Origin: Squalus acanthias
Taxonomy: Eukaryota
Assembly: GCA_030390025.1 (NCBI GenBank)
Contig: JASTWF010000499.1
Coordinates: forward strand, 1 to 64,000
Direction of reading: 5' to 3'
Length of the DNA: 64,000 nt
Positions 22,037-64,000 of the stretch are shown in pieces. A program made the translations under genes and the position numbers. Each line of letters begins with the position of its first letter. The first letter of the stretch is position 1. The notes under the pieces were generated by a model. The model searched no databases. It saw nothing but the letters and a program-made list of their open reading frames with translations, and was not told the origin of the DNA.

Positions 22037-22426
22037 ATCTTTGTAGAATGCACTTGCAAAAATTAAGGCAATCACACACACACACACATATATAAAACAA
22101 ACACATTCTCTACGCTCTTTTCAGTTCTTCCTCTGAACCAGATGAGCGTTAGTGAACCCGGTGGTCATTATGACCCAGCGGCGGCCCAGCCGGCGGTGCT
22201 GTGAGGTCACGGTTCCAGGCTCTGTCACACAATCAGTGGGTGACGTGGAATCTAAATAGAAAATACTGCAGGAAAAACAATCCTTAACATTAAAAACTGC
22301 GATCAATTGGCACAGGGCAATACAAGTGTGAATTAGTAAACTTTAACACAGAGTTTGCCCCAAATAGAGAGTTGGACGAGTGCAGTAATAACTGAGACAT
22401 GATCTCGTGAAATATAAACAGATGTG

Positions 22427-35003: not shown

Positions 35004-35246
35004 NNNNNNNNNNNNNNNNNNNNNNNNNNNNNNNNNNNNNNNNNNNNNNNNNNNNNNNNNNNNNNNNNNNNNNNNNNNNNNNNNNNNNNNNNNNNNNNNN
35101 NNNNNNNNNNNNNNNNNNNNNNNNNNNNNNNNNNNNNNNNNNNNNNNNNNNNNNNNNNNNNNNNNNNNNNNNNNNNNNNNNNNNNNNNNNNNNNNNNNNN
35201 NNNNNNNNNNNNNNNNNNNNNNNNNNNNNNNNNNNNNNNNNNNNNN
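35004..35246. other. Assembly gap (243 N)
   Basis: N run. Confidence 1.
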
Positions 35247-36760: not shown

Positions 36761-36858
36761 TGGTGATGTGGAAGGTGTGACGTGGATCCAGTAGCCGCCT
36801 CTATCAGGGAATCAATAGGCGGCGCCTGTAACCTCGCCCCCTTCTACCGGGTATTTAA
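36761..36858 (+). promoter_or_regulatory. Putative VH promoter: CRE-like TGACGT (36778-36783) and TATA-like TATTTAA (36852-36858); no octamer seen
   Basis: Lies about 100-170 bp upstream of the leader ATG; shark IgH promoters are known to lack the octamer. Confidence 0.45.
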
Positions 36859-36950
36859 CTGCCGGTCACTGGGACCGCAATACAACAGTCCGGGAGCGGG
36901 TTTGCTCAGTGAGTTCTTGTCAGAACCATTTCCCACACATTGCCAGGAGG

Positions 36951-36996
36951 ATGAGATCGGCGATTTTTCTCAGTCTGTTGTTGGCTTTCTTATCCC
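36951..36996 (+). CDS. IGHV: IgH leader exon (MRSAIFLSLLLAFLS)
   Basis: Hydrophobic signal peptide; phase-1 donor C|GTGAGT splices in frame to the V exon. Confidence 0.93.
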
Positions 36997-37123
36997 GTGA
37001 GTAGTTTTTATTGTCCAAGTCTCTCACTGTTACTGTCTCAGTGTTAGTCTCTCTCTGGAATGTTACAGAGTCAGGAATCATTTCTCCAGGATTAATTCTC
37101 GGGGTCTTTGATTGTTTTTACAG

Positions 37124-37438
37124 GTGTCCAGTCGGATGTCGTGTTGACTCAGCCAGCGGCAGAGACCGGGAGTCCCGGAGGCTCCCTGAGACTAACCTGT
37201 AAAACCAGCGGGTTCACTCTAAGTAGCACCCACATGCATTGGTTCCGACAGGTTCCCGGACAAGGACTGGAGTGGCTGGTTAGATATTACAGTTCATCAG
37301 ACAAGTATTACGCTCCAGTGATTGAGAGTCGATTTACTGCGTCCAAAGACACTTCAAACAGCATCTTCGCTTTGGACATGAAGAACCTGAGGACCGAAGA
37401 CTCCGCCATCTATTACTGTGTAAGAGACGGCAGTGGGT
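37124..37438 (+). CDS. IGHV: VH exon germline-joined to a D remnant (…YYCVRD-GSG)
   Basis: Acceptor TTTACAG; [33 protein letters not shown]; about 11 extra nt after GTAAGAGA before the heptamer. Confidence 0.96.
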
Positions 37439-37476
37439 CACGGTGCTGCACAGAGCGAGCTCCTCATACAAAAACC
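37439..37476 (+). promoter_or_regulatory. Recombination signal sequence, 22-bp spacer (CACGGTG-22-ACAAAAACC)
   Basis: 6/7 heptamer and consensus nonamer. Confidence 0.95.
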
Positions 37477-37678
37477 CCAGACTTGGAGTTTGCTCACACC
37501 TGCGATCACTGCCACGGCAGGAGCGGCGGAGAAAATGAGGCTTAAATTAAAATAATGGGTAAAAGTAACATAGATTTATAAAAATATCTCACTGATGCAC
37601 TCTTAGGGGAGTCGGAATCAGGGTTTTCAGAGCGCTGTGGAATTTCATCTCTGTATTTTACAGTTAACAGTCCGCCGG

Positions 37679-37706
37679 AGTATTTGGCACGGCATGTCTC
37701 ACTGTG
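37679..37706 (-). promoter_or_regulatory. Recombination signal sequence, 12-bp spacer (AGTATTTGG-12-CACTGTG)
   Basis: Consensus heptamer; 6/9 nonamer at exactly 12 bp. Confidence 0.85.
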
Positions 37707-37753
37707 CAGTGGGTGGCCATGGGGACAAGGCACCATGGTGACGGTGACTGCAG
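37707..37753 (+). CDS. IGHJ: Germline-joined D-JH segment (SGWPWGQGTMVTVTA)
   Basis: WGQG motif; donor G|GTAAG; no 22/23-RSS and no (Y)FDY upstream of W. Confidence 0.92.
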
Positions 37754-37789
37754 GTAAGAAACATTCACACTTTCAGCAACTGTTGTATT

Positions 37790-39072
37790 TGTGCTTTTAT
37801 GTTATATTTCAGTTTATTTCAAAAATTCATTCATTCACTGAAACTTGGGTTCGGTGTATTCTGTATTGAGATTTTTTGCTCTGTTTCATTTGATTCTGCT
37901 GCAAAGGGTTAATAGGTTTAAACAGTTTCTTCAGAAAAAGTGTTGTTGAGGGATTGAGCCCCTGATTGATGTGATTTGGTGTTTATCTGTTGATGAGACT
38001 GTGTGCCTGGGTTACTTTAATTACCCAACGGTTGTTGAACTGTTTGGAGTTTCTACAATGTTTAATCTCGGTGACATCTAATGGTTGCTGGTTTTCTGAT
38101 CAAATGTAAACATTATGTGACTAAATGTGTTTGAAATAAGATTGCAGACAGAAAACAGAAAGCTTTAGCGGTCAAACATAATCTTAAGATATTTTAATGT
38201 ATTTTTATTTGTGATATTTACATTGCCAGCTTTTAATCTAATGTTCACCAACGGTCATATTCAATACGTGAAATGTTACTGTAATTTATAACTGCATAAT
38301 CAACACATTTATAACCTGAATCAGATTTAACTTAATATAAATAAAGTTATCATATGTAGTAATATCACCCAATATTACAACAATATCCGATATCAATAGT
38401 AATTTATTAAACCTGATCCGTCTACTCACAATTCCGCTGTTATTATTTTATATTTTTGTTTATTTCAATAATTAATTCGTTCAGTGATAGATGGGTTCGC
38501 TGGATTCTGTATTGAGATTTTTTTGCAATGTTACATTTGATTCTGCTGAAAGGGTTTATAGAATGAAGCTGCTTCTCCACAAAACGTTCTGTTGCGGGAT
38601 TCAGCCGCTCAGTGATGTGATTTGCTGTTTATCTGCTGAGGAGAGTGTGTGCCTGGGTTACTTTGAATAAGTAAAGTTTGAGACACTGTTTGGCGTTTCT
38701 GCAATGTTTAATCTCGGTGACATCGAACTGCTGCAGGTTTTCTGATCTGTTTAAAACGGTTTGAAAGATGATTGTCGGCAGACAAGTAGGTTTTATAAAT
38801 CAAATATCATTAAAAAATAATTTAATGCATGTTTTTATTTAAGTGAGAATTACAGATTCAACTATTAATCTATGGTTTACGGTGCTCACATTTAACAGGT
38901 GAAATGTTACTGAAATTACGAATTATATAATTAACAATTGGCAAGTTGAAGGAGAGTTAAATTAATATAACTCAAACGATTAGAATGAAGTAATATTGAC
39001 CAATATCACTAAATATGCTGTAGGATTAATATTAATGTATTAAACATTATTCGCCTTCCACAATTCTGCTGT
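37790..39072 (+). repeat. Diverged tandem duplication (~645-bp period) at the start of the J-C intron
   Basis: Colinear matches, e.g. ATTCTGTATTGAGATTTTTT, GTGTGCCTGGGTTACTTT, CAATGTTTAATCTCGGTGACATC, GTGAAATGTTACTG in both copies. Confidence 0.85.
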
Positions 39073-41224
39073 GCACTGGTCACAATTAACGTGAGCGGAG
39101 AATTTTAGAGGCTGGAGACAATTTCTGATTTATGTCTGAAATTATTTTAATAACAGCAGACTGATTCCACCGCAGTGTTCAGTTTAATGAGGGGTTTGAA
39201 ATTAATTGTTATCTCCCTGTTTCACACAGATAAATGACAGATTGTATTTAATTATGCATTAAATGCGAGTATAAATTGCAGTTTATAAATGTAATAAATC
39301 TGCCGGGTTATTAAATTCTTACTGAACAGCGGAAACCATGCTATTCCTTCAACATTATTTGTTGTTTGATAGCGAGACAATTATCACTAAACTAATCTTC
39401 AGCAGTTTGTAAGATCATAGGCTGAGCGGTCGCTAGCAGTCAAAGAATTGTTCATATGATTCTATTTAAATTCACGGAAGGTGAAGACTGCGTAAGGCTG
39501 GAGACAGACAAATAACCCATTGACATTCAAGCAGATTAATTTAATTACAAAAGGTTAATATTAGTTTTGAATGTAATAACAACATCCTGCCTCCCATAGC
39601 TGTGCTGTATACGGGATAGAATTATAGACAGGGAACAGATCACATCTGAGAGTTATGTTTAATTCTCATTAATGTTAAATTGATCAACAAAATCTCTCCT
39701 CCATTTGCTTATTAAATTTCAGTGTCGCAGATGGTCTGATTGATTTGTTCTCCGCCAGTTTTACATTGATCATTCTGGAACTGATTTTCAATAACTAGCA
39801 GAATATATTTAATACTTAATTTACGGGCATTGTGTGAATTACGGGAGTAAAGTATAAAAAGATTGTCTGTGTTATTAAATAGCGGAGTCTCTGTTACTGA
39901 CTGCAAACTGGCCATTTGTTTTTTAATTCACGAAAATAGTATTTATAGTTAAGATTGAGGACAATGTTTAAACTCGAGAGCCCTGCTTTAGTAAACACAC
40001 GGTGTTACAGTCCATCGGTAGTTAGTGAGCTGTGACCACGGCCAGACTTTGAACTATTTAAAATAGTCCACTCCTAAATCCATCATGTGAAATCCACTCT
40101 GAGAAAAGATGGAGTTTAAGTTATACCAGAGAGTTTAGAAACATGTAATGTTTACAAGTGTGTAGATAGAGAGCGGGAATGTATTAGAAGTTAGTGACCA
40201 TTTTAACTTATTCAAATGTGATTTGATTTAAATAAAAATAATATATTTGTCTGAATGTCTTTATCTATTAATATGATTTTTAATATTGATAAGTGTCATG
40301 TTAATTTAATTGAAACCCTATAAGTTCACAAGTTACCAGGCAGAAACAGGAGTAAAATTAATATCAACCAGTTTTAATATAGTGCAGCATGACATCAATA
40401 TTAACTTAGAATATAATATGAGTGCGAATTTATTAAACATAAATGACCTCCCACAATTGCGTTGTATACTGGACAGGATTACAGTTACTGTAAAATCTCA
40501 AGGGTTGGGCAGAATTTTAAATTATGTCTAAAATTAATTTAGAAACAATACATGTCTTACTCAGCTGTGCACAGCTGGAGAAGGTGTCGCCGCAGATTTT
40601 AATGAATTAACTTTGTGTTTTGCCTCGATGATTTTACCGCTTATATTTAATTATTAAATTATCTTAACCCAGTGGTTCCTAGTTCGTTAAATTCTTACTC
40701 TGTCACGGAGTCCCTGTTATATGCAGCAAATTACCCTGTAATGTGAATTATTTCAGTAAACTTGTTTTCAGGGAAGCTAAATCTTATTTGTTTGTAAGAT
40801 TGTAGACAGGGAGGGAGAAATGGTTGGAAGTCGAAGAACCTTTTCAAATTAAGATCAGTTTAATTTCAAAAAACGTTCAGACTTGAGGTGGTCGGAAATT
40901 GACAAGGGATCAATTAGAAATCAGCTTCATTGAAATTGACAGATTGAAGAGATCTATCTGCTGAGAGCACGATTGTTGCACCGTTTGTGTCTGTTCGGTT
41001 TCTGTGCGCCTGCTCACTGTGTGAGAATCAGGAGTCCGCCTGACTGGTTGTAAACCTGCTGGTTTGTTGTCTTGTGTTTCATGGAGTACAATTCGACTCA
41101 GTTATTTCAGAAGGTTGTATCTGTGAGAAATGCGATAGTTTGACTTTAAGTTTGAGGAGGCGTCTCAGTAACCCAGTTTGTGACATTCAGAAGCAGCATT
41201 TCAGAAACACGTCTGGCAGACTGT

Positions 41225-42525
41225 AGAATGAGCTTTAATCAGTTTCTATCTCGTGCCGTACCTGCCCTGGGAGTGTTTGATGGGACAGTGTAGAGGGAGC
41301 TTTAATCTGTATCAACCCGTGCTGTACCTGCCCTGGGAGTGTTTGATGCGACAGTGTAGAAGGAGCTTAATCAGTATCTAACCCGTGCTGTACCTGCCCT
41401 GGGAGTGTTTGATGGGACAGTGTAGAGGGAGCTTTACTCTGTATCTAACCCGTGCTGTACCTGCCCTGGGAGTGTTTGATGGGACAATGTAGAGGGAGCT
41501 TTACTCTTTATCTAACCCGTGCTGTACCTGCCCTGGGAGTGTTTGATGGGATAGTGTAGAGGGAACTTTACTCTGTATCTAACCCGTGCTGTACCTGCCC
41601 TGGGAGTGTTTGATGGGACAGTGTAGATGGAGCTTTACTCTGTATCTAACCCATGCATCACCTGCCCTGGGAGTGTTTGATGGACAGTGTCGCGGGAGCT
41701 TTACTGTGTATCTAACACGTGCTGTACCTGCCCCGGGAGTGTTTGATGGGACATTGTAGAGGGAGCTTTACTCTGTATCTAACCCGTGCTGTACCTGCTC
41801 TGAGCGTGTTTAATGCGACTGTGTAGAGGGAGCTTTACTCTGTATCTAACCCGTGCTGTAGCTGCCCTGGGATTGTTTGATCAGACAGTGTAGAAGGAGA
41901 TTTACTCTGTATCTAACCCGTACTGTACCTGCCCTGGGAGTGTTTGATGGGACAGTGTAGACGGAGCTTTACTCTGTATCTAACCCGTACTGTACCTGCC
42001 TTGGGAGTGTTTGACGGGACCGTGTAGACGGAGCTTTACTCTGTATCTGACCTGTACTGTACCTGCCCTGGGAGTGTTTGATGGGACAGTGTAGAGGGAG
42101 CTTTACTCTGTATCTAACCCGTACTGTACCTGCCCTGGGAGTGTTTGATGGGACAGTGTAGACGGAGCTTTACTCTGTATCTGACCTGTACTGTACCTGC
42201 CCTGGAAGTGTTTGATGGGACAGTGTAGAGGGGGCTTTACTCTGTATCTAACCCGTGCTGTTATGCCCCGTGAATCTTTGATGGTTCATTGTAGAGGGAG
42301 AATTTACTCTGTATCTAGCCCGTGTTGTACCTGCCCTGGGAATGTTTGATTGTGCACTGTAGATGGGGCTTTACTCTGTATTTAACCAGTGCGGTGCCTT
42401 ACCCGGAGTGTTTGACAGTGCTGTGCAGACTTGGCGTTGCTCGGAATCAATCCCTTCCTATACCTGAGGGTACAGCGTATGGCAGTGCAGTGCAGAGAGA
42501 GCTTTACTCTGTATCTGTACTGTAA
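41225..42525 (+). repeat. 67-bp satellite array inside the J-Cmu intron
   Basis: Same unit as 6150-21365. Confidence 0.95.
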
Positions 42526-46436: not shown

Positions 46437-46736
46437 CGACACAGTCTCCTCCCACCCTCTACGCCCTGCTCTCCTCCTGTGAACAACCCAACACCGGCGG
46501 CCCCGTCACCTACGGCTGTTTAGCGATGGACTACTTCCCGGAAACCACCAGCCTTTCCTGGAGGAAAGATAAAGAGCCGATCACCACTGGATTGAAGACC
46601 TACCCGTCAGTGTTCAACAAGCAGGGAACCTACACCCTGAGCAGCCAGTTAACCATCACCGAGTCAGAGGTGGGGAGCAGCGCCATCTACTGCCAGGTTC
46701 GACAAAGTGGGTCGGACTGGAGCGTCCAAATGCCAG
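46437..46736 (+). CDS. IGHM: IgM Cmu1 exon
   Basis: TCCCAG| acceptor, G|GTTAGT donor; [29 protein letters not shown]. Confidence 0.95.
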
Positions 46737-46749
46737 GTTAGTGTTGTGG

Positions 46750-48005
46750 GATACAGGGGGAAACTGTGAAAAGCAGAGAAGTTATGTTCAACTTCAATAC
46801 AACTTTGTTTAGACCAGACTTAGAGTACTGTGCACAGGTCTGGTCTCGATATCACACTTGGAGTACTGTGTACAGGTCTGATCTCCATATCACACTAAGA
46901 GCACTGTGTACAGGTCTGGTCTCCATATCACACTTAGAGTACTGTGTACAGGTCTGGTCTCCATATCACACTTAGAGTACTGTGTACAGGTCTGGTCTCC
47001 ATATCACACTTAGAGCACTGTGTACAGGTCTGGTCTCCATATCACACTAAGAGTACTGTGCACAGGTCTGGTCTCCATATCACACTTAGAGTACTGTGTA
47101 CAGGTCTGGTCTCCACATCACACTAAGAGTACTGTGTACAGGTCTGGTCTCCATATCACACTTAGAGCACTGTGTACAAGTCTGGTTTCCTTATCACACA
47201 TAGAGTACTGTGCACAGGTCTGATCTCCATATCACACTTAGAGTACTGTGTACAGGTCTGATCTCCATATCACACTTAGAGAACTGTGTACAGGTCTGGT
47301 CTCCATATCACACTTAGCGCGCTGTGTACAGGTCTGGTCTCCATATCACACTTGGAGCACTGTGTACAGGTCTGGTCTCCATATCACACTTACAGTGCTG
47401 AGTACAGGTCTGGTCTCCATATCACACTTGGAGCACTGTGCACAGATCTCGTCTCCATATAACACTTAGTGTACTGCCTATAGTTTTGGTTTCTATAATA
47501 TAAGAATGATACAGAGGCACTGGAGAAATGGAAAAAAAGATTTACAAGGACGATACCAGAAAGAAAAATTGTAACTGTCAAGAATGATTGAACGGGCTTG
47601 GGATCTTTTCTGTAGAAAATAAAGTCTGAGGGTTGACCGAATTGAGGTCTTTAAAATTATGAGGGGGTTTGAAAGGTTAGACGCAGAGACAATATTTCTG
47701 CTTGAGGAGGAGCCCGATACTAGGGGCCATAAATATAAGATAATCACTAATAAATCTAATAGGGAATTCAGGAGAAACTTCTTTACCCAGAGAGTGGGTA
47801 GAATGTGGAACTCGCTACCACATGGAGTAGTTGAGGTGAACAGCATAGATGCGTTTCAGGGGAGTCTAGATAAGTACAGGAGGGAGAAAGGAATAGAAGG
47901 TTATGTTGATGGGGAGATGAAGTAGGGAGAGAGGAGGCTCATGTGGTGCATAAACACCGACCTGTTGGGCCCAGTGGCCTGTTTCGGTGTTGTAGATTCT
48001 ATGTA
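46750..48005 (+). mobile_element. CR1 3' fragment containing an amplified 38-bp minisatellite
   Basis: KSREVM..LFRPDLEYCAQVWS; RRNFFTQRVGRMWNSLP; tail GATTCTATGT. Confidence 0.85.
46818..47475 (+). repeat. 38-bp minisatellite (CACACTTAGAGTACTGTGTACAGGTCTGGTCTCCATAT)
   Basis: Period 46929 to 46967; unit encodes the CR1 HLEYCVQVWSPY motif. Confidence 0.95.
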
Positions 48006-48075
48006 AAAAACCACTTTACAGATCTTAATTGTTGGGATTCCAACAAATAATCCAATAAAATGTATTTTCTTGCAG

Positions 48076-48387
48076 GTCCTGTGGAACATCATCCAACTGT
48101 TATCCTCACCCTGAGTTCCAGTGAAGAAATCATCAGCAGCAGGTCTGCAACCGCCGTCTGTTCAATCATCGATTTCCATCCAAAGTCACTGACCGTGAAT
48201 TGGCTGAAGAATGGACAACTCATGGATTCGGGATTCGTCACCTCTCCCGTCTTTGAAGTGAACGGGAACTTCTCGGCGACCAGTCGGCTGACATTCCCCA
48301 CCGGGGAATGGTTCGCCGACTCGGTCTATACCTGCCAGGTCACTCATCAAGGGGTCACCCAAAGCCCAAACATCTCCAGATCTCAGG
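48076..48387 (+). CDS. IGHM: IgM Cmu2 exon
   Basis: TTGCAG| acceptor, G|GTAAG donor; [22 protein letters not shown]. Confidence 0.95.
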
Positions 48388-48689
48388 GTAAGAGACACAA
48401 TCCCGAGAAGTCCCAGATCATTCTGACCGCTGATCTCTGCCAGGACTTTTATTGGAATTAGTAAAAAGCACAGAACTATTTCTAATTTCCAATGACACAG
48501 TTTGTGTTTCCTTCCGATGTCAGTGCTGACTCAGGATTCCTCATGGTTCAGGATTCCAGCACTTCGCCAAAGGTTTCCCTCAGCTGTGCTGTCAGACAGT
48601 GAGTGCGGTGTCCTTAGTCTCAGGTTTACCCTGAGAAAGCTCTATTTCTAATTTACAATCATGCTTTTTGTGTTTTCTTCCGATATAAA

Positions 48690-50552: not shown

Positions 50553-50861
50553 ATGGTTCCTCATGCAACGATCCAGAAATCACTCTTCCGCAACCGTCAG
50601 TAGAACAGGTCTTACTGGAGGCGACGGTGACCTTAACCTGCGTCGTGTCTAATGCTCCTTATGGAGTCAACGTGTCCTGGACCCGAGAAAAGGAGACTTT
50701 GAAATCAGAGATTGCCGTCCAACCCGGAGAGGCTCCCAACAGTGTGATCAGCAACTTAAACATCTCGACACAAGCCTGGCTGAGTGGGGATAAGTTCTAC
50801 TGCGTGGTGAGCCATCAGGATATGACAACTCCTATAAGAGAATCCATCCACAAGGAAAAAG
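50553..50861 (+). CDS. IGHM: IgM Cmu3 exon
   Basis: TTCACAG| acceptor, G|GTGAG donor; [31 protein letters not shown]. Confidence 0.95.
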
Positions 50862-51009
50862 GTGAGCGGTGAGATTGTAGCAATAAGTGAGACTCTGTGA
50901 CTATTTCCGGTGCTTTTGCACGGCCCAATTCGTTCTATTAAGTGTTTTAATGGACTGCTCTGATAATTCAATGGGTAATTCCACTAACTAAACACTCTGG
51001 GACCAGAGA

Positions 51010-51379: not shown

Positions 51380-51771
51380 CTAAAGATCCGCGGGAACCGT
51401 CCGTGTCTGTCCTCCTGCCCCCGGCAGAAGAAGTCTCCGCTCAGAGGTTCGTCAGCCTCACCTGCTTAGTGAGAGGTTTCTCCCCGCGAGAGATCTTCGT
51501 CAAGTGGACCCTCAATGATAAGCCGGTGAATTCCTGCAACTACAAGAACACCGAGGTGATGGCGGAGAACGGCAGCAGTTCCTTCTTCATGTACAGCCTG
51601 TTATCCATTGCAGCGGAGGAGTGGGCCAGCGGCGCTTCTTACTCCTGTGTGGTGGGACATGAAGCGATCCCCTTGAAGATCATCAACAGAACGGTTAATA
51701 AATCCAGCGGTAAACCCAGTTTTGTCAACATTTCCCTTGTTCTGATGGACACCGTCAATTCTTGTCAATGA
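51380..51771 (+). CDS. IGHM: IgM Cmu4 exon with secretory tailpiece (internal donor after 51709 for the membrane form)
   Basis: CTGCAG| acceptor; [20 protein letters not shown]; tail [20 protein letters not shown] with N-glycan sequon and penultimate Cys. Confidence 0.96.
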
Positions 51772-51815: not shown

Positions 51816-52204
51816 GGTATTTTCTTCCAATCGTCAGTTACACACACAGCCGCTCAATTAATTTTGTTTCCCATTTTTGCCAAGGGGAGGGCTGTTTATC
51901 TGAAGCAGGATATTTGCCGGTCTCGGGCCCAAGCCTTGTACAGCCAGCGCTCCCAGCTCAGATACACCACGGGTTAGAGACAGACTGAAACTCTTTCATG
52001 ACAGGATTCCTCAAAGTCACTTCAGCGACTTTCCTCCCGCTGGGGGGAATCTGAAAAATTCCAAATTCTGACAAACAAACGCAGCACATTTCGATCTCGG
52101 TGTCCCTGTTTCTCGTGTTGTCCATCCCGTCAGAATTGGGGCAGTTTTATTTTGCAGCATCGCACCCTCTGGGATCTGAAATAAGGACACACACGAACAC
52201 GAAC

Positions 52205-54232
52205 TGTACCCTCACTCCCCCACCAGAGAGAGGGGAAAGGGTAATTGTTAACCCACGATACCCCCACTCCCCCACCAGAGAGAGGGGAAAGGGCAATTGT
52301 TAACCCACTGTACCTCCCACCCCCCCCCCCAGAGAGAGGGGAAAGGGCAATTGTTAACCCACTGTACCTCCCACACCCCCCCAGAGAGAGGGGAAAGGGC
52401 AATTGTTAACAGACTGTACCTCCACTCCCCCACCAGAGAGAGGGGAAAGGGCAATTGTTAACCCACTGTACCTCCCACTCCCCCACCAGAGAGAGGGGAA
52501 AGGGCAATTGATAACCCACTGTACCTCCCACTCCCCCACCAGAGAGAGGGGAAAGGGCAATTGTTAACCCACTGTACCTCCCACTCCCCACCAGAGAGAG
52601 GGAAAAGGGCAATTGTTAACCCACTGTATCTCCCACTCCCCCACCAGAGAGAGGGGAAAGGGCAATTGTTCACCCATTGTACCCCCTACTCACCCACCAG
52701 AGAGAGGGAAAAGGGCAATTGTTAACCCACTGTACCTCTCCACTCCCTCACCAGAGAGAGGGGAAAGGGCAATTGTTAACCCACTGTACCTCCCACTCCC
52801 CATCAGAGAGAGGGAAAAGGGCAATTGTTAACCCACTGTACTCCCACTCCCCCACCAGAGAGAGGGGAAAGGGCAATTGTTAACTCACTGTACACCCACT
52901 CCCCCACCAGAGAGGGGGGAAAGTGCAATTGTTAACCCACTGTACCTCCCACTACCCCATCAGAGAGAGGGGAAATGGCAATTGTTAACCCACTGTACCC
53001 CCACTCCCCCACCAGAGAGAGGGGAAAGGGCAATTGTTAACCCACTGTACCTCCACTCCACCACCAGAGAGAGGGGAAAGGGAAATTGTTAACCCACTGT
53101 ACTCCCACTCCCCCACCAGAGAGAGGAGAAAGGGCAATTGTTAACCCACTGTACCCCCCACTCCCCCACCAGAGAGAGGAGAAAGGGCAATTGTTAACCC
53201 ACTGTACCTCCCACTCCCCCACCAGAGAGAGTGGAAAGGGCAATTGTTAGCCCACTGTACCTCCACTCCACCACCAGAGAGAGGGGAAAGGGCAATTGAT
53301 AACCCACTGTACCCCCACTCCCCCACCAGAGAGAGGGGAAAGGGCAATTGATAACCCACTGTACCCCCACTCCCCACCAGAGAGAGGGGAAAGCGCAATT
53401 GTCTAACCCACTGTACTCCCACTCCCCCACCAGAGAGAGGGGAAAGGGCAATTGATAACCCACTGTACCCCCCACTCCCCCACCAGAGAGAGGGGAAAGG
53501 GCAATTGTTAACACACTGTTCCTCCCACTCCCCCACCAGAGAGAGGAAAGGGCAATTGTTAACCACTGTACCCCCCACTCCCCCACCAGAAAGAGGGGAA
53601 AGGGCAATTGTTAACCCACTGTACCTCCCACTCCCCCACCAGAGAGAGGGGAAAGGGCAATTGTTAACCCACTGTACCTCCACTCCACCACCAGAGAGAG
53701 GGGAAAGGGCAATTGTTAACCCACTGTACTCCCACTCCCCCACCAGAGAGAGGGAAAGGGCAATTGTTAATCCACTGTACCCCCACTCCCCCACCAGAGA
53801 GAGGGGAAAGGGCAATTGTTAACCCACTGTACCCCCACTACCCAACTAGAGAGAGGGGAAAGGGCAATTGTTAACCCACTGTATCTCCCACTCCCCAACC
53901 AGAGAGAGGGGAAAGGGCAATTGTTAACCCACTGTACCCCCACTCCCCCACCAGAGAGAGGGGAAAGGGCAATTGTTATTCCACTGGAACCCCCACTCCC
54001 CCACCAGAGAGAGGGGAAAGGGCAATTGTTAACCCACTGTATCTCTCACTCTCCCAGCAGAGAGAGGGGAAAGGGCAATTGTTAACCCACTGTAGTTCCC
54101 AATCCCCTACCAGAGAGAGGTGTAAGGTCAATTGTTAACCCACTGTACCTCCCACTCCCCCAGCAGACAGAGCGGAAATGGCAATTGTTAACCCACTGTA
54201 CCTACCACTGCCCCACCATAGAGAGGGGAAAG
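52205..54232 (+). repeat. 52-53-bp minisatellite (CCCACTCCCCCACCAGAGAGAGGGGAAAGGGCAATTGTTAACCCACTGTACCT) in the Cmu4-TM1 intron
   Basis: Unit read directly; remnant resumes at about 54916 after a CR1 fragment. Confidence 0.96.
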
Positions 54233-54915
54233 ATCATTTTCAGGTTGGAAAGCTGTAACTAGTGGGGTGCCACAGGGATCAATGCTGGCGCCTCAATTAT
54301 TTACAAACTATATTAATGACTTGGATGAAGGGACCGAGTGTACTGTTGCCAAATTTGCTGACGATACAAAGATAGGCGGGAAAGCAAGTTGTGAGGAGTA
54401 CTCAAAGATTCTGCAAAGGTATAAAGACAGATTAAGTGAGAGTGCAAAAATTTGGCAGATGGAGTATAATGTGGGAAAATGTGAGGTTATCCACTTTGGA
54501 AGGAAGAATAAAAAAGTAAAATATTATTTAAATGGAGAGAGACTACAGAATGCTGCGGTACAGAGGGACCTGGGGGTTCTCGTACATGAAACTCAATAAG
54601 TTAGCATGCAGGTACAGCAAGTAATTAGAAAGGCAAATTGAATATTGGCCTTTATTGCAAGGGGGATGGAGTATAAAAGTAGTGAATTCTTGCTACATGT
54701 GTACAGGGCGTTCGTGAGATCACACCTGGAGTACTGCGTACAGTTTTGGTCTCCTTATTTAAGGAAGGATATATTTGCATTGGAGGCAGTTCAGTGAAGG
54801 TTCCCTAGGATAATTCCTGAGTTGAAGGGGTTGTCTTATGAGGAAACGTTGAGCAGGTTGGGCCTATACTCATTGGAGTTTCGACGAATGAGAGATTATC
54901 GCATTGAAACATAAC
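54233..54915 (+). mobile_element. CR1 RT fragment
   Basis: VPQGSML, YINDLD, KFADDTK; in-frame stops. Confidence 0.9.
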
Positions 54916-57849: not shown

Positions 57850-60800
57850 ACATGTGCAGGAAGTGTCTCCAGCTGCAGCTACTCGAAATCCGCGTTTCGG
57901 AGCTGGAGCTGCGGCTGGAGTCACTGTGGAGCATCTGCGAAGCTGAGATCTTCGTGGATAGCACGTTTAACGAGGTGGTCACACCGCAGGTAAAGAGTGC
58001 ACAGGCAGACAGGAAACGGGTGACCGCCAGATAGAGCAAAAGAACTAGGAAGGTAGTGCAGGAGTCCCCTGGGCCCATCTCCCTCTCCAACAGATTTTCC
58101 GTTTTGGATACTGATGGGGGAGATGGTTTCTCAGGGGAATGCAGCAAGAGCCAAGTCCGTGGCACTACGAGTGGCTCAGCTGCACAGGAGGGGAGGAAAA
58201 AGAGTGGGAGAGCAATAGTGATAGGGGATGCTATCGTAAGGGGAACAGATAGACGTTTCTGTGGCCGCAGACGTGACTCCAGGATGGCATGTTGCCTCCC
58301 TGGTGCCAGGGTCAAGGATGTCACTGAACGGCTGCAGGGCATTCTGAAGGGGGAGGGCGAACAGTCAGAGGTCGAGGTTCACATTGGTACCAACGATATG
58401 GGTAGAAAGAGGGATGAGGTCCTGCAACAAGAATTTATGGAACTAGGTAGCAGATTATAAAGCAGGACCTCAAAGGTTGTATTCTCTGGATTACTCCCGG
58501 TGCCACGTGCTAGTGAGTATAGGAATAGGAGGATAGAGCAGATGAATACGTGGCTAAAGAGTTGGTACAGGAGGGAGGGCTTTAGTTTCCTGGATCACTG
58601 GGTTTGCTTCTGGGGAAGGTGGGACCTGTACAAGTCGGACGGGTTGCCCCTGAACCGGAACGGGACCAACATCCTTGCGGGGAGGTTTGCTTGTACTGTT
58701 GGGGGGTGTTAAAACTAACTTGGCAGGGGGATGGGATACGGAGTGGAGCTATAGTAGGGGGTGATGCACAGCCAAATATAGAGGAAAAAACAAGTCAGCC
58801 TGGAAGGCAGAGCAAATATGTAACGGCACAAGGGTGTATGGCAAGGCTGGATGGCATTTATTTTAATGCAAGGAGTCTTGCGAGTAAGGCAGATGAATTG
58901 AAGGTGTTGATGAACACATGGGAGTATGATATTGTTGCTATCACAGAGACATGGTTGAGGGATAGGCAGGACTGGCAGCTCAATATTCCGGGGTATAGAA
59001 TCTTCAGGCGAGACAGAGGGGGGTGTAAAAGAGGAGGGGTTGTCGCAATATTAATCAAGGAGTCAATTACTGCTGTAAGGAGGGATGATATCTTAGCAGG
59101 TTCCTCTAATGAGGCCATATGGGTAGAACTTTAAAAAAAAGGGGGGCAAGCACTTTGCTGGGAGTGTAATATAGGCCCTCAAACAGTCAGGGGGAGATAG
59201 AGGAACAGATATGTAGGCAAATCTCAGAGAAGTGTAGAAATAATAGGGTAATAATAGTAGGGGATTTCAACTTCCCCAATATTAACTGGGATAGTCAGAG
59301 TGTGAAAGGCTTAGAAGGTGCGGAATTCTTAAAGTGCATCCAGGAGAGCTTTTTGAGCCAGTATGTAGAACGTCCTACAAGAGAGGGGGCGGTACTGGAC
59401 ATAATTCTAGGGAATGTAGCCGGGAAAGTGGTAGAAGTGTCAGTAGGATAGCATTTTGGTGACAGTGACCATAATTCGGTGAGATTTAAGGTAGTCATGG
59501 AAAAGGACAAAGATGGATCAGAAATAAAGGTTCTAAATTGGGGGAAGGCCGATTTTAATATGATAAGGCAGGATCTGGACAAAGTGGACTGGGATCAGCT
59601 ACTTGTCAGAAAATCCACATCAGAGCAGTGGGAGTCTTTCAGAAAGGAAATAGAGAGAGTACAACGCCAAGGGGAGATCATGTCTGACCAATTTGATTGC
59701 ATTTTTCGAGGGGGTGACTAGTGTGTGGATGAGGGTAGTGCAGTTGATGTAGTTTACATGGACTTCAGTAAGGCTTTTGACAATGTCCCGCATGGGAGAC
59801 TGGTCAAGAAGATAAGCGCCCATGGGATTCAGGGCAATTTGGCACATTGGATCCAAAATTGGCTTAGTAGTAGGAGGCAGAGGGTGATTGTCGAAGGTTG
59901 TTTTTGTGACTGGAAGCCTGTGTGCTGTGGAGTACCGCAGGGATCGGTGCTGGGTCCTTTGCTGTTTGTAGTGTACATTAATGATTTAGATATGAAAGTA
60001 GGAGGTTTGATCAGTAAGTTCGCAGATGACACGAAAATTGGTGGAGTGGTAAATAGCGAGGAGGGAAGCCTCAGGCTGCAGGACGATATAGACGGGTTGG
60101 TCAGATGGGCAGAACAGTGGCAAATGGAATTTCACCCTGAAAACTGTGAGGTGATGTATTTTGGGAGGACTAACAAGGCAAGGGAATACACAATGAATGG
60201 TAGGACCCTAGGAAGGACAGAGGTTCAGCGGGACCTTGGTGTGCATGTACATAGATCCCTGAAGGCAGCAGGACAGGTAGATAAGGTGGTTAAAAAGGCC
60301 AATGGGATACTTGCCTTTATTAGCCGAGGCATAGAATATAAGAGCATGGAGGTTATGATGGAGCTGTACAAAACGCTAGTTAGGCCACAGCTGGAATACT
60401 GTGTGCAGTTCTGGTCGCCACACTATAGGAAGGATCTGATTGCATTGGAGAGGGTGCAGAGGAGATTCACCAGGATGTTACCTGGGCTGGAGCGCTTCAG
60501 CTATGAAGAGAGACTGGACAGGCTGGGGTTGTTCTCCTTAGAGCAGAGAAGGCTGAGGCGGGACCTGATTGAGGTGTACAAAATTATGAGGGGCATAGAT
60601 AGGGTAGTTGGAAAGGAACTTTTCCCCTCAGTAGAGGGGTCAATAACCAGGGGGCATAGTTTTAAGGTAAGGGGCAGGAGGTTTAGAGGGGATTTGAGGA
60701 AAACTTTTTCACCCAGAGGGTGGTTGGAATCTGGAACTCACTGCCTGAAAGGGTGGTAGAGGCAGGAACCCTCACAACATTCAAGAAGCATTTAGATGAG

Positions 60801-61567: not shown

Positions 61568-64000
61568 CATAGAAACATATGAGTAGGCCATTCGGCCCTA
61601 CGAGCCTGCTCCGCCATTCAATATGATCATGGCTCTCTCCCCATACCCCTTGATACATTTTGTGTCTAGAAATCTATCTATCTCCTTCTTAACTAAATTC
61701 AGTGACTTGGCCTCCACTTTCTTCTGTGGTAGAGAATTCCACAGGTTCACCACCCACTGAGTGAAGAAATTTCTCCTCATCACAGAATCCCCACAGTGCA
61801 GATAGAGGCCATTTCGGCCCATCGAGCCTGCACCGACACATATCCCATCCTATCCCCACGTATTTAATCCCCCCTAACACTAAGGGTCAATTTATCATAG
61901 CCAAATCAACCTAACCCGCACATCTCTGGACTGTGGGAGGAAACCGGAGCACCCGGAGGAAACCCACGCAGACACGGGGAGAATGTGCAAACTCCACACA
62001 GACAGTCACCCGAGGCCGGATTCGAACCCGGGTCCCTGGCGCTGTGAGGCAACAGTGCTAACCACTATGCCACCGTGCTGCCCTTCACATTTATCTCAGT
62101 CCTAAATGTCCTACCCCGTATCCTGAGACTGTGACCCTTCATTCTAGAGCCCTCAGCCAGGGGAAATATCCTCCCTGCATCCAGTCTGTCTAGCCCTGTC
62201 AGAATTTGATACGATTCAATGAGATCCCCTCTCATTCTTCTAAACTCTAGTGAATACAGGCCTAGTCGACCCAATCTCTCCTCATACGACAGTCCTGTAA
62301 TCCCAGGAATCAGTCTGGTGAACCTTCGCTGCACTCCCTCTATGGCAAGTATATCCTTTCTTAGGTAAGGAGAACAAAACTGCACACAGTACTCCAGGTG
62401 TGGTCTCACCAAGGCCCTGTATAACTGTAGTAAGACATCCTTGCTCCTGTACTCAAATCCTCTTGCAATGAATGCCAACATACCATTTGCCTTCCTAACT
62501 GCTTGCTGCACCTGCATGTTTGCTTTCAGTGACTGGTGTACAAGGACACCCAGGTCCCTTTGTACATTTGTACTTTGTACCTCAGCATTTCCCAATCTAG
62601 CACTATTTAAATATTACTCTACCTTTCTGTTTTTCCTACCTAAGTGGATAACTTCACATTTATCCACGTTATCCTGCATCTGCCATGTATTTACCCACTC
62701 ACTCAACTTGTCTAAATCGCCTTGAAGCCTCTTTGCATCCTCCTCACAATCCCACCTAGTTTCGTGTCGTCAGCAAACTTGGAAATATTACATTTGGTTC
62801 CCTCATCCAAATCATTGATATATATTGTGAATAGCTGGGGCCCAAGCACTGATCCTTGCGGTACCCCACTAGTCACCGCATGCCACCCCGAAAAAGACCC
62901 ATTTATTCCTACTCTCTGTTTCTTGTCTGTTAACCAATTTTCAATACATGCCAGTATATTACCCCCAATCCCATGTGCTTTAATTTTGCACACTAACCTC
63001 TTATGTGGGACTTTATCAAAGGCTTTCTGAAAATCCAAATACATCACATCCACTGGTTCTCCCTTATCTATTCTACCGGTTACATCCTCAAAAAACTCCA
63101 GTAGGTTTGTCAAACACGGTTTCCCTTTCATAAATCCATGTTGACTTTGTCTAATCCCTTTGATATTTTCTAAGTGTCCTGTTATCACATCCTTTATAAT
63201 AGACTCTAGCATTTTCCCTACTACTGATGTTAGGCTAACCGGTCTGTAGTTCCCTGTTTTCTCTCTCCCTCCTTTTTGAAATAGTAGGGTTACATTTGCC
63301 ACCCTCCAATCTGCAGGAACTGTTCCATAATCTATAGAATTTTGGAAGATGACAACCAATGCATCCACTATTTCCATGGCTACCTCTTTTAGTACTCTGA
63401 TATGCAGATTATCAGGCCCTGGGGATTTATCAGCTTTCAGTCCCATTAATTTCACCAGCACCATTTTTTTACTAATACTAATTTCCTTTAATTCCTCCTT
63501 CTCACTAGACCCTTGGTTCCCTGTCATTTCTGGGAAGTTATTTGTGTCCTCTTCCGTGAAGACAGAACCAAAGTATTTGTTTAATTGCTCTGCCATTTCC
63601 TTGTTCCCCATTATAAATTCTCCCGTTTCTGATTGTAAGGGACCTACATTTGTCTTCACTAATCTTTTTCTTTTTACATACTTATAGAAGCTTTTACAAT
63701 CCGCTTTTATGTTCCTTGCAAGTTTACTCTCATACTCTATTTTTCCCCTCTCAATCAATCTCTTGGTCCTTTTTTGCTGAACTATCAACTTCTCCCAATC
63801 CTCAGGCTTGCTACTTTTTCTGGCAACTTTATATGACTCCTCTTTGTATCTAATACTTTCCGTAATTTCTTTTGTTAGCCATGGTTGGGCCGCTTTTCCT
63901 TTTGTGTTTTTGCGCCAGAAAGGAATGTATAACTGTTGCAATTCATGCATTCGTTCCTTAAATGTTAGCCATTGCCTATCCACCGTCATGCCTTTTAATG
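61568..64000 (-). mobile_element. CR1 LINE ORF2 (tether + RT + 3' end), frameshifted, running off the window; contains a SINE
   Basis: ORFs 62712-63989 and 62065-62595 ([25 protein letters not shown]). Confidence 0.93.
61781..62083 (-). mobile_element. HE1-like tRNA SINE inserted in a CR1
   Basis: Closely similar reverse complement of 21726-22036; splits the CR1 sequence TTCTCCTCAT|CTCAGT. Confidence 0.9.

Follow-up and report, generated by a model that had tools for sequence, protein, structure and literature searches.

A partly joined IgM cluster of Squalus acanthias with a second copy of the D1 end beside its D1-D2 spacer

We analysed a 64,000-nucleotide stretch of Squalus acanthias DNA (assembly GCA_030390025.1, contig JASTWF010000499.1, positions 1 to 64,000 of the forward strand; this whole stretch is called the window below). 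It carries one complete IgM-type heavy-chain cluster of cartilaginous fish, with a leader, a variable (V) exon, a joining (J) segment and four C1-set constant (C) exons. The V is fused to the first diversity segment (D1), and between D1 and the J side lies the spacer that separates D1 from the second diversity segment (D2), bounded by a recombination signal sequence (RSS) at each end. As a gene it belongs to a known kind, the VD-DJ IgM cluster, probably in germline form. What is new is that the end of D1 is duplicated, flanks the RSS-bounded spacer and stands where D2 should start. We give about even chances to the reading that a non-standard, RAG-linked rejoining in the germ line made the duplicated D1 end.

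The spacer, its flanking repeat and the segment ends of related clusters

A preliminary description of this DNA had reported an RSS-bounded interval between two exact copies of an 8-mer, with both heptamers abutting the copies, and the window sequence and an RSS scan bear out every element. On the left, CAGTGGGT (37431-37438) is followed directly by the heptamer CACGGTG (37439-37445), a 22-nt spacer and the nonamer ACAAAAACC (37468-37476). On the right, the nonamer AGTATTTGG (37679-37687), a 12-nt spacer and the heptamer CACTGTG (37700-37706) run directly into a second CAGTGGGT (37707-37714). No base lies between heptamer and 8-mer on either side. The direct repeat is 8 bp long; counting G37430 and also G37706, with which the right heptamer ends, makes it 9. 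The 8-mer occurs three times on the + strand of the 64 kb, as the flanking pair and as an unrelated copy at 22234, and the chance of an exact 8-mer match in a fixed register, from local base composition, is about 2e-5. The spacer ends coincide exactly with one 12-type and one 23-type heptamer, as in RAG transposition, and the D1 3' 23-type and D2 5' 12-type signals are both kept and convergent around the D1-D2 spacer, as in VD-DJ genes. Of the two signals, the 23-type one combines the heptamer CACGGTG with a perfect nonamer, and the 12-type one combines a perfect heptamer (read as CACAGTG on the opposite strand) with a nonamer matching at 6 of 9 positions.

For comparison with unjoined genes, Logan contigs of four coded runs were aligned to 36850-37850 at 85% likeness (104 from X1, 97 from X5, 14 from X6 and 2361 from X8). 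These contigs derive from related clusters, perhaps of other species, in runs that have low coverage, were targeted or belong to other organisms; contig counts below are among the contigs listed. Relatives match the V up to 37428 and then carry a V signal beginning CACAGCG (one X1 contig, three X6 contigs). Their D1 has the heptamer CACTGTG and GTACTA directly before 37431, followed by the window's CAGTGGGT and the same 23-type signal (one contig each from X5 and X6), so that the left 8-mer is native D1, as the preliminary description had itself suspected. Just before 37431 the unjoined relatives have TA where the window has GG. On the far side of the spacer, all four contigs that reach 37706 (two from X1, two from X6) continue with ATACAACGGGGGGC, starting ATACAAC, and not with CAGTGGGT; in X1 the heptamer CACAGCA then follows. 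The trivial explanation of the repeat, that ordinary D2 segments begin with CAGTGGGT, had been named beforehand as the thing to check, and it failed against these related clusters. Native J, finally, joins the window from 37720, preceded in relatives by the heptamer CACTGTG and about 14 J letters (three X1, two X5 and two X6 contigs).

The spacer itself can be followed in X6 record 20 (986 nt), which runs from native D1 through the entire spacer into native D2 and has 5 differences from the window over 37431-37706. Three of these fall in 37431-37585 and two in 37582-37706; between the two parts stand contig letters 258-364 (about 107) that are absent from the window. Contigs from X1 (six) and X5 (three) also diverge before 37582, and the window's D1-D2 spacer is thus a deleted derivative. 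It is a genuine D1-D2 spacer, collinear with X6 record 20 and with each signal on its native side. In X6 record 21, 8 of 85 positions are unlike the window, and yet it has the same native D2; being more distant with D2 unchanged, it indicates that D2 is conserved across relatives further off than the window's cluster. In the V and leader there are many positions at which every aligned contig differs from the window.

The features of the spacer region are as follows.

37431..37438, + strand: left CAGTGGGT, native D1 3' end with its own 23-type signal attached (one X5 contig, one X6 contig)
37439..37476, + strand: D1 3' recombination signal, CACGGTG, 22-nt spacer, ACAAAAACC (sequence, RSS scan)
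37439..37706, + strand: D1-D2 spacer, 268 bp, bounded by both signals and lacking about 107 nt present in relatives near 37582-37585 (X6 record 20)
37679..37706, + strand: D2 5' recombination signal, AGTATTTGG, 12-nt spacer, CACTGTG (sequence; native D2 follows the same signal in relatives)
37707..37714, + strand: right CAGTGGGT, second copy of the D1 3' end at the position of the native D2 start (ATACAAC...; 4 of 4 contigs listed that reach 37706)
37715..37719, + strand: GGCCA, of which GGC is probably the last 3 letters of native D2 (compared by eye)

Some side observations concern the same elements. Nested within the D1 23-type signal is a 12-type look-alike (37449-37476), in which CACAGAG at 37449 is separated by 12 nt from the perfect nonamer ACAAAAACC that both share; it could in principle let D1 pair with 23-type signals. 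Just past the C-mu-4 exon, each unit of a minisatellite at 52203-54232 (52 bp, 38.7 copies, 90% matches) holds the reverse complement of the 8-mer, ACCCACTG; this looks like a coincidence. One DNA-type contig of X5 (depth 96.6) passes from V directly to J (37420 to 37720) with 32 letters between, including the D1-like GGCAGTGAGT; in our reading it is in frame and is a fully joined VDJ relative in the DNA run of the X5 organism.

The 11 letters after the 12-signal are D1's last 8 followed by D2's last 3, at 11 of 11 positions. The first 11 letters of D2 are missing, and 8 letters of D1 stand in their place against an intact heptamer (37706/37707); a VD-DJ gene would have a native D2 5' end next to the 12-signal and fused to J, whereas here at most the GGC of D2 is left. 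The right flank, CAGTGGGT-GGC-CA-TGGGG..., reads as a D1-D2-J coding joint with J trimmed by about 14 letters, and with the left flank it makes up a complete V-D1-(D2)-J joint, in frame, into which its own spacer is set. This structure cannot come from two standard joins, V to D1 and D2 to J, since these leave the D2 5' end untouched at its signal. A break exactly at an intact heptamer beside processed coding DNA points instead to a RAG cut at the border of 12-signal and D2, with the signal end joined to a coding-type end, and the junction at 37706/37707 has the makeup of such a non-standard joint, an intact signal end meeting a coding-type end that has both lost and gained letters. In a hybrid joint proper the signals are exchanged and the spacer is inverted; the spacer here is in native orientation.

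Possible origins of the duplicated D1 end

The germline setting, the order of events and the repair route of the proposed rejoining are what we infer from this structure. The starting point would be a germline IgM cluster, partly pre-assembled in the VD-DJ layout with V fused to D1; RAG would have cut the cluster in the germ line, and one step would have been resolved in a non-standard way. By one route, a D1-D2J coding joint, still nascent or already finished and with its strands offset by 8 nt, would have received the signal-ended spacer again by ligation. The D1 coding end would have carried an 8-nt single-strand tail, already copied onto the D2J end, and the repeat would then equal exactly D1's terminal letters and abut both heptamers. 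By the other route, a hybrid or open-and-shut type joint would have formed at the 12-signal, the processed coding end having copied or captured a second D1 end from the sister chromatid, the allele or a paralogue. Neither route is canonical RAG transposition. Both are plausible, if unproven, given the germline hybrid joint at the D1-D2 spacer in horned shark and the somatic reinsertion without 5-bp duplications in mouse that are discussed below.

Several points weigh against such a rejoining. An 8-nt offset is not the preferred product of any known RAG-linked pathway, and the proposed repair routes are constructed to fit. The in-frame reading obtained when the repeat is collapsed (see below) is only a 1-in-3 coincidence under other models. 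Native D2 without its first ATA shares 8 of 11 letters with the right 11-mer, and CAGTGG-like strings occur late in complementarity-determining region 3 (CDR3) in some RNA-type junctions, where they could derive from D1-like D2 segments. Among the pieces listed for the four runs, no contig bridges the window's own V-D1 junction or the junction at 37706/37707, and the allele is known from the assembly only.

The resemblance between D2 and the right flank is what an ordinary origin would build on. In that case the locus would be a VD-DJ gene made by two standard deletional joins, and the right 8-mer would be its own D2, either a D1-like variant or one converted by D1, through the common descent of D segments. 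D1 and D2 of the relatives are visibly related (TACAGTGGGT vs TACAACGGGG, 7 of 10 letters by eye), VD-DJ is a known layout, and, beside the 8/11 match, RNA-type CDR3 strings such as CAGTGGTTGG have CAGTGG-like motifs at the D2 position. We nevertheless regard this origin as rather unlikely. The same 12-signal is followed by ATACAACGGGGGGC in 4 of 4 contigs listed, from relatives both closer and further in spacer sequence; a D1-like D2 would need three substitutions, all toward D1 letters, and the loss of ATA beside an untouched heptamer, within 14 nt, and the adjoining 125 nt differ from X6 record 20 at only 2 positions. In Heterodontus, another species, D segments vary little between clusters as far as the available text of that work goes. 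With a D1-like D2 the locus would be simply one more VD-DJ gene, for which the 8-nt homology built into it would still lead one to expect a restricted CDR3. If the locus is confirmed, the question becomes testable through sister clusters and sister species: an uninterrupted sister VDJ with GGCAGTGGGTGGCCATGGGG would be at odds with a D1-like D2, and the 12-signal followed by CAGTGGGTGG with an intact 3' D2 signal in a sister-species orthologue would be at odds with a non-standard rejoining.

The preliminary description had offered, as one of two readings, that a joined VDJ was split again. That a fully joined germline VDJ was split by the return of its own RSS-bounded D1-D2 spacer, leaving the 8-bp duplication, seems to us possible, though we lean against it. 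The part of the claim that stands is that the flanks read as a complete in-frame V-D1-(D2)-J joint; the part that finds no support is RAG transposition in the strict sense. Were the spacer re-inserted, an uninterrupted sister, the empty site, would read AGAGACGGCAGTGGGTGGCCATGGGG.

Canonical transposition, in which a germline VDJ that was already fully joined took up a signal-ended D1-D2 fragment by RAG strand transfer, with the 8-mer as the target-site duplication, had likewise been suggested from the outset. The fragment ends exactly at both heptamers, the direct repeat is exact, the flanks collapse to an in-frame VDJ, and the right flank is not native D2; moreover, the reinsertion of excised DNA in shark germ cells is raised explicitly as a question in the available text of Lee et al. 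(2000). The duplication is nevertheless 8 or 9 bp where RAG transposition, in the parts of the literature consulted, gives 5, rarely 4 or 3. The left junction is the native junction of D1 and 23-signal over at least 8 letters, so that a staggered cut would have to end exactly at the D1 end, and an insertion at a random target would meet that junction only by luck. In mouse, reinsertions in vivo were recovered at both ends without such duplications (Curry 2007). We consider strict transposition very unlikely.

It is equally improbable, in our judgement, that the structure is an artefact, either because paralogous clusters, being near-identical, were confused in assembly or polishing, or because the DNA is that of a lymphocyte clone with an aberrant partial rearrangement. 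The family is large, highly similar and hard for assemblers, and both the lack of a listed contig bridging the cluster's own junctions and the many V and leader positions at which every aligned contig differs from the window would suit this explanation. However, misassembly or polishing would not put the breakpoints precisely on the borders of two heptamers, each next to an exact copy of the 8-mer, a somatic clone would not win the assembly consensus, and the silence of four runs that are low-coverage, targeted or from other organisms is uninformative.

Other candidate routes were rejected on paper. P-nucleotide or hairpin routes would leave inverted repeats, whereas the repeat here is direct. 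A joined paralogue, acting through homologous crossover or gene conversion, could not set a break at a heptamer border and would bring the first 6 letters of D1 with it. Two successive inversions would leave no duplication, the letters do not fit a 5-bp duplication with shifted element ends, and cleavage at cryptic heptamers within D1 would fall at the wrong positions, CAGTGGG being without CAC.

One-step joining and the surrounding cluster

A precise join of 37438 to 37707 is out of frame and runs into stops, and removal of the spacer with one copy of the repeat (276 nt) gives an in-frame reading, in agreement with the preliminary description. The signals are convergent and 12/23-compatible, so that a single deletional RAG step is possible, and the gene appears to be one 12/23 deletion short of being expressible; the earlier classification as a germline-type IgM cluster one RAG step from completion was sound. 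Because the same 8 letters stand at both coding ends, one junction is favoured, CVRDGSGWPWGQG. When all trimming pairs free of added (N) letters were computed, the collapsed product with CDR3 VRDGSGWP (junction DGSGWPW) arose from 9 of 169 pairs, and from 9 of the 56 in frame, as the commonest outcome. Microhomology-guided repair would favour the DGSGWPW product further.

The proposal that this amounts to a pre-set CDR3 holds as a structural possibility and finds no support in expression. Neither the 276-nt skip nor DGSGWPW was seen in the 10 V-to-J joint contigs listed (nine from X8, one from X5), which come from other clusters, possibly of other species, with rare forms dropped. Window-specific V letters are nearly absent from the RNA-type run, perhaps of another species: at 36956, a depth of 46,729.7 out of 46,739.2 belongs to the other letter. 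That the gene is maintained so as to supply, through one homology-guided step, a heavy chain that hardly varies (CDR3 VRDGSGWP), for instance in early life, would be compatible with any origin of the repeat, and we think it unlikely. Its 12/23-compatible signals, with a perfect nonamer on the 23 side and a perfect heptamer on the 12 side, the 8 identical letters at both coding ends, the in-frame product that is commonest without added letters, and the intact leader, splice sites and four C exons would all suit such a role, and germline-joined shark genes are, in the available text of Lee et al. (2000), expressed mainly early in ontogeny. Beside the expression results just given, the possible added letters at both junctions (GG and CA) speak against it, since repair would then not have been addition-free, contrary to a purely homology-guided outcome.

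The remaining features of the cluster are listed here.

36951..36996, + strand: leader exon, ATG at 36951, donor GTGAGT from 36997 (sequence; RNA-type contig joint 36996 to 37124 with GT..AG ends)
37124..37428, + strand: V exon to the native V end (...TACTGTGTAAGAGAC), V-set domain (Pfam V-set, E 1.5e-17; relatives diverge after 37428)
37429..37430, + strand: GG between V and D1, either added or belonging to a D1 variant (TA in unjoined relatives)
37720..37753, + strand: J core (TGGGGACAAGGC...ACTGCAG; WGQGTMVTVTA) without about 14 native J 5' letters, donor GT at 37754 (contigs of relatives)
46437..46741, + strand: C-mu-1 exon, approximate ends (open reading frame, ORF; Pfam C1-set, E 1.3e-14; start placed from RNA-type loose ends after 37753)
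48060..48398, + strand: C-mu-2 exon, approximate ends (ORF; Pfam C1-set, E 8.1e-19)
50627..50869, + strand: C-mu-3 exon, part, approximate ends (ORF; Pfam C1-set, E 4e-8)
51403..51771, + strand: C-mu-4 exon with secretory tail, then stop (ORF; Pfam C1-set, E 4.4e-21)

The V-D1 fusion reads V...AGAGAC-GG-CAGTGGGT, with neither a V signal nor a D1 5' signal between, and the four C1-set exons, the last with a secretory tail, make up a complete C-mu gene downstream in the same cluster, as expected of a VD-DJ gene. RNA-type contigs run on past 37753 into the start of C-mu-1. GGCAGTG is also found at two other junctions among the contigs, and the junctional GG may be encoded by D1 in some clusters. 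Neither an RSS scan nor a tblastn search with the V domain turned up any V or signal pair in the 64-kb window other than those described. Protein and domain searches were run on the V and C exons separately, the joined VDJ model being used for frame checks only. With the V exon, 17 of 23 candidates matched at E <= 1e-20, the nearest being shark VH proteins with at most 76% identity (Heterodontus, Chiloscyllium, Scyliorhinus), and no DGSGWPW CDR3 or close relative was present among the 8 matched VH sequences inspected.

At the J border, CCATGGGGACAAGG (37715-37733) resembles the J letters of relatives (CCATGGACTACTGGGGACAAGG; in another contig CCATGGGAGACTGGGG...) minus 8 internal letters, and the CCA before the J core may, on this faint likeness of 3 to 7 letters, be derived from J rather than added. 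The J to C-mu-1 intron holds a tandem array at 41222-42415 (67 bp x 17.9) and a tandem repeat of about 590 bp (37797-38386 vs 38443-39016, 74% identity), and the C-mu-1 to C-mu-2 intron holds a further array at 46818-47476 (38 bp x 17.3). Long ORFs downstream of the cluster, at 54267-54599 and 59725-60759 (+) and at 62065-62595 and 62712-63989 (-), have reverse-transcriptase-like motifs such as FADDTK and are probably LINE-type retroelements. A run of 243 N (35004-35246) lies about 1.7 kb upstream of the leader.

Comparison with known systems

Germline IgM clusters that are partly joined (VD-DJ, VD-J) or fully joined (VDJ) are known in cartilaginous fish, as found in horned shark by Kokubu et al. 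(1988) according to a review and to the available text of Lee et al. (2000), where they are attributed to RAG activity in germ cells. VD-DJ is given in the accessible literature as a common somatic intermediate in nurse shark. The present locus resembles germline VD-DJ clusters in being a single cluster running from V to J and C-mu with V fused to D1, one RAG step from completion, in keeping the D1-D2 spacer with its 23-type and 12-type signals, and in having a J without a signal of its own. It differs in that a second copy of the D1 end, and not a native D2 start, follows the 12-signal, and in the exact 8-bp repeat around the spacer. The literature on germline-joined shark clusters, in the portions covered, which leave aside the primary horned-shark paper and supplements, has no mention of a flanking repeat at such spacers. 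In motif searches of the literature the one relevant match was the indexed text of a 1993 Heterodontus paper, where the 8-mer appears twice and, with a leading A, once, as letters whose context lies outside the readable part.

One horned-shark case is a non-standard product. As the commentary of Lewis and Wu reports it, in the part available, the D1-D2 spacer was inverted in the germ line by a hybrid joint between two clusters (Kokubu 1988). There, as proposed here, a non-standard RAG product is fixed in the germ line, involving the same RSS-bounded D1-D2 spacer and signal ends joined to coding ends. In our locus, by contrast, spacer orientation and signal sides are native, and the anomaly lies in the duplicated D1 end and the missing D2 start.

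Short homologies direct canonical junctions in the gamma-delta T cell receptor genes and B-1 antibody genes of the fetal mouse, the known homologies being 1-5 nt and native to the segments. Identical coding-end letters would in the same way bias this locus toward one in-frame product when few letters are added. Here the homology is 8 nt and is non-native on one side.

RAG-mediated transposition of signal-ended fragments (Agrawal 1998; Hiom 1998) leaves duplications of 5 bp, rarely 4 or 3, in the accounts available. The likeness lies in an RSS-terminated fragment with its heptamers outermost and a direct repeat, such that removing the fragment and one copy restores the ORF; the difference lies in the repeat of 8 (or 9) bp and in one flank that is the fragment's own native neighbour. 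Broken RSS ends, excised signal circles and RAG-released fragments are also reinserted somatically in mouse and human lymphocytes (Curry 2007; Rommel 2017). As in those cases, RAG-released DNA may here have been returned by end joining or trans-V(D)J recombination, with intact heptamers beside processed DNA and no 5-bp duplication. The somatic events fall mostly at cryptic heptamers on other chromosomes and are without flanking duplication, whereas here the event would be germline, at the home locus, and with an 8-bp repeat. A further study, by Vanura in 2007, is reportedly to be grouped with this somatic reinsertion of RAG-released DNA.

The evidence from nature that RAG continues to reshape genomes in the germ line comes mainly from germline-joined antibody genes of sharks, and all of it has so far run in one direction, from split genes to joined ones. 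The return of RSS-bounded DNA into a joined gene is required by every model for the origin of split receptor genes, and flanking duplications as the footprint of this reverse step were looked for and not found by Lee et al. (2000) and in the accompanying commentary, as far as the available texts of both go. If such a return took place here, the locus would be the first natural germline case of the 'reverse' event, about which Lee et al. (2000) had asked and without which models of how split receptor genes and D segments arose do not work, and its product would be a functional gene that rearranges in one step and has a canonical CDR3 built in.

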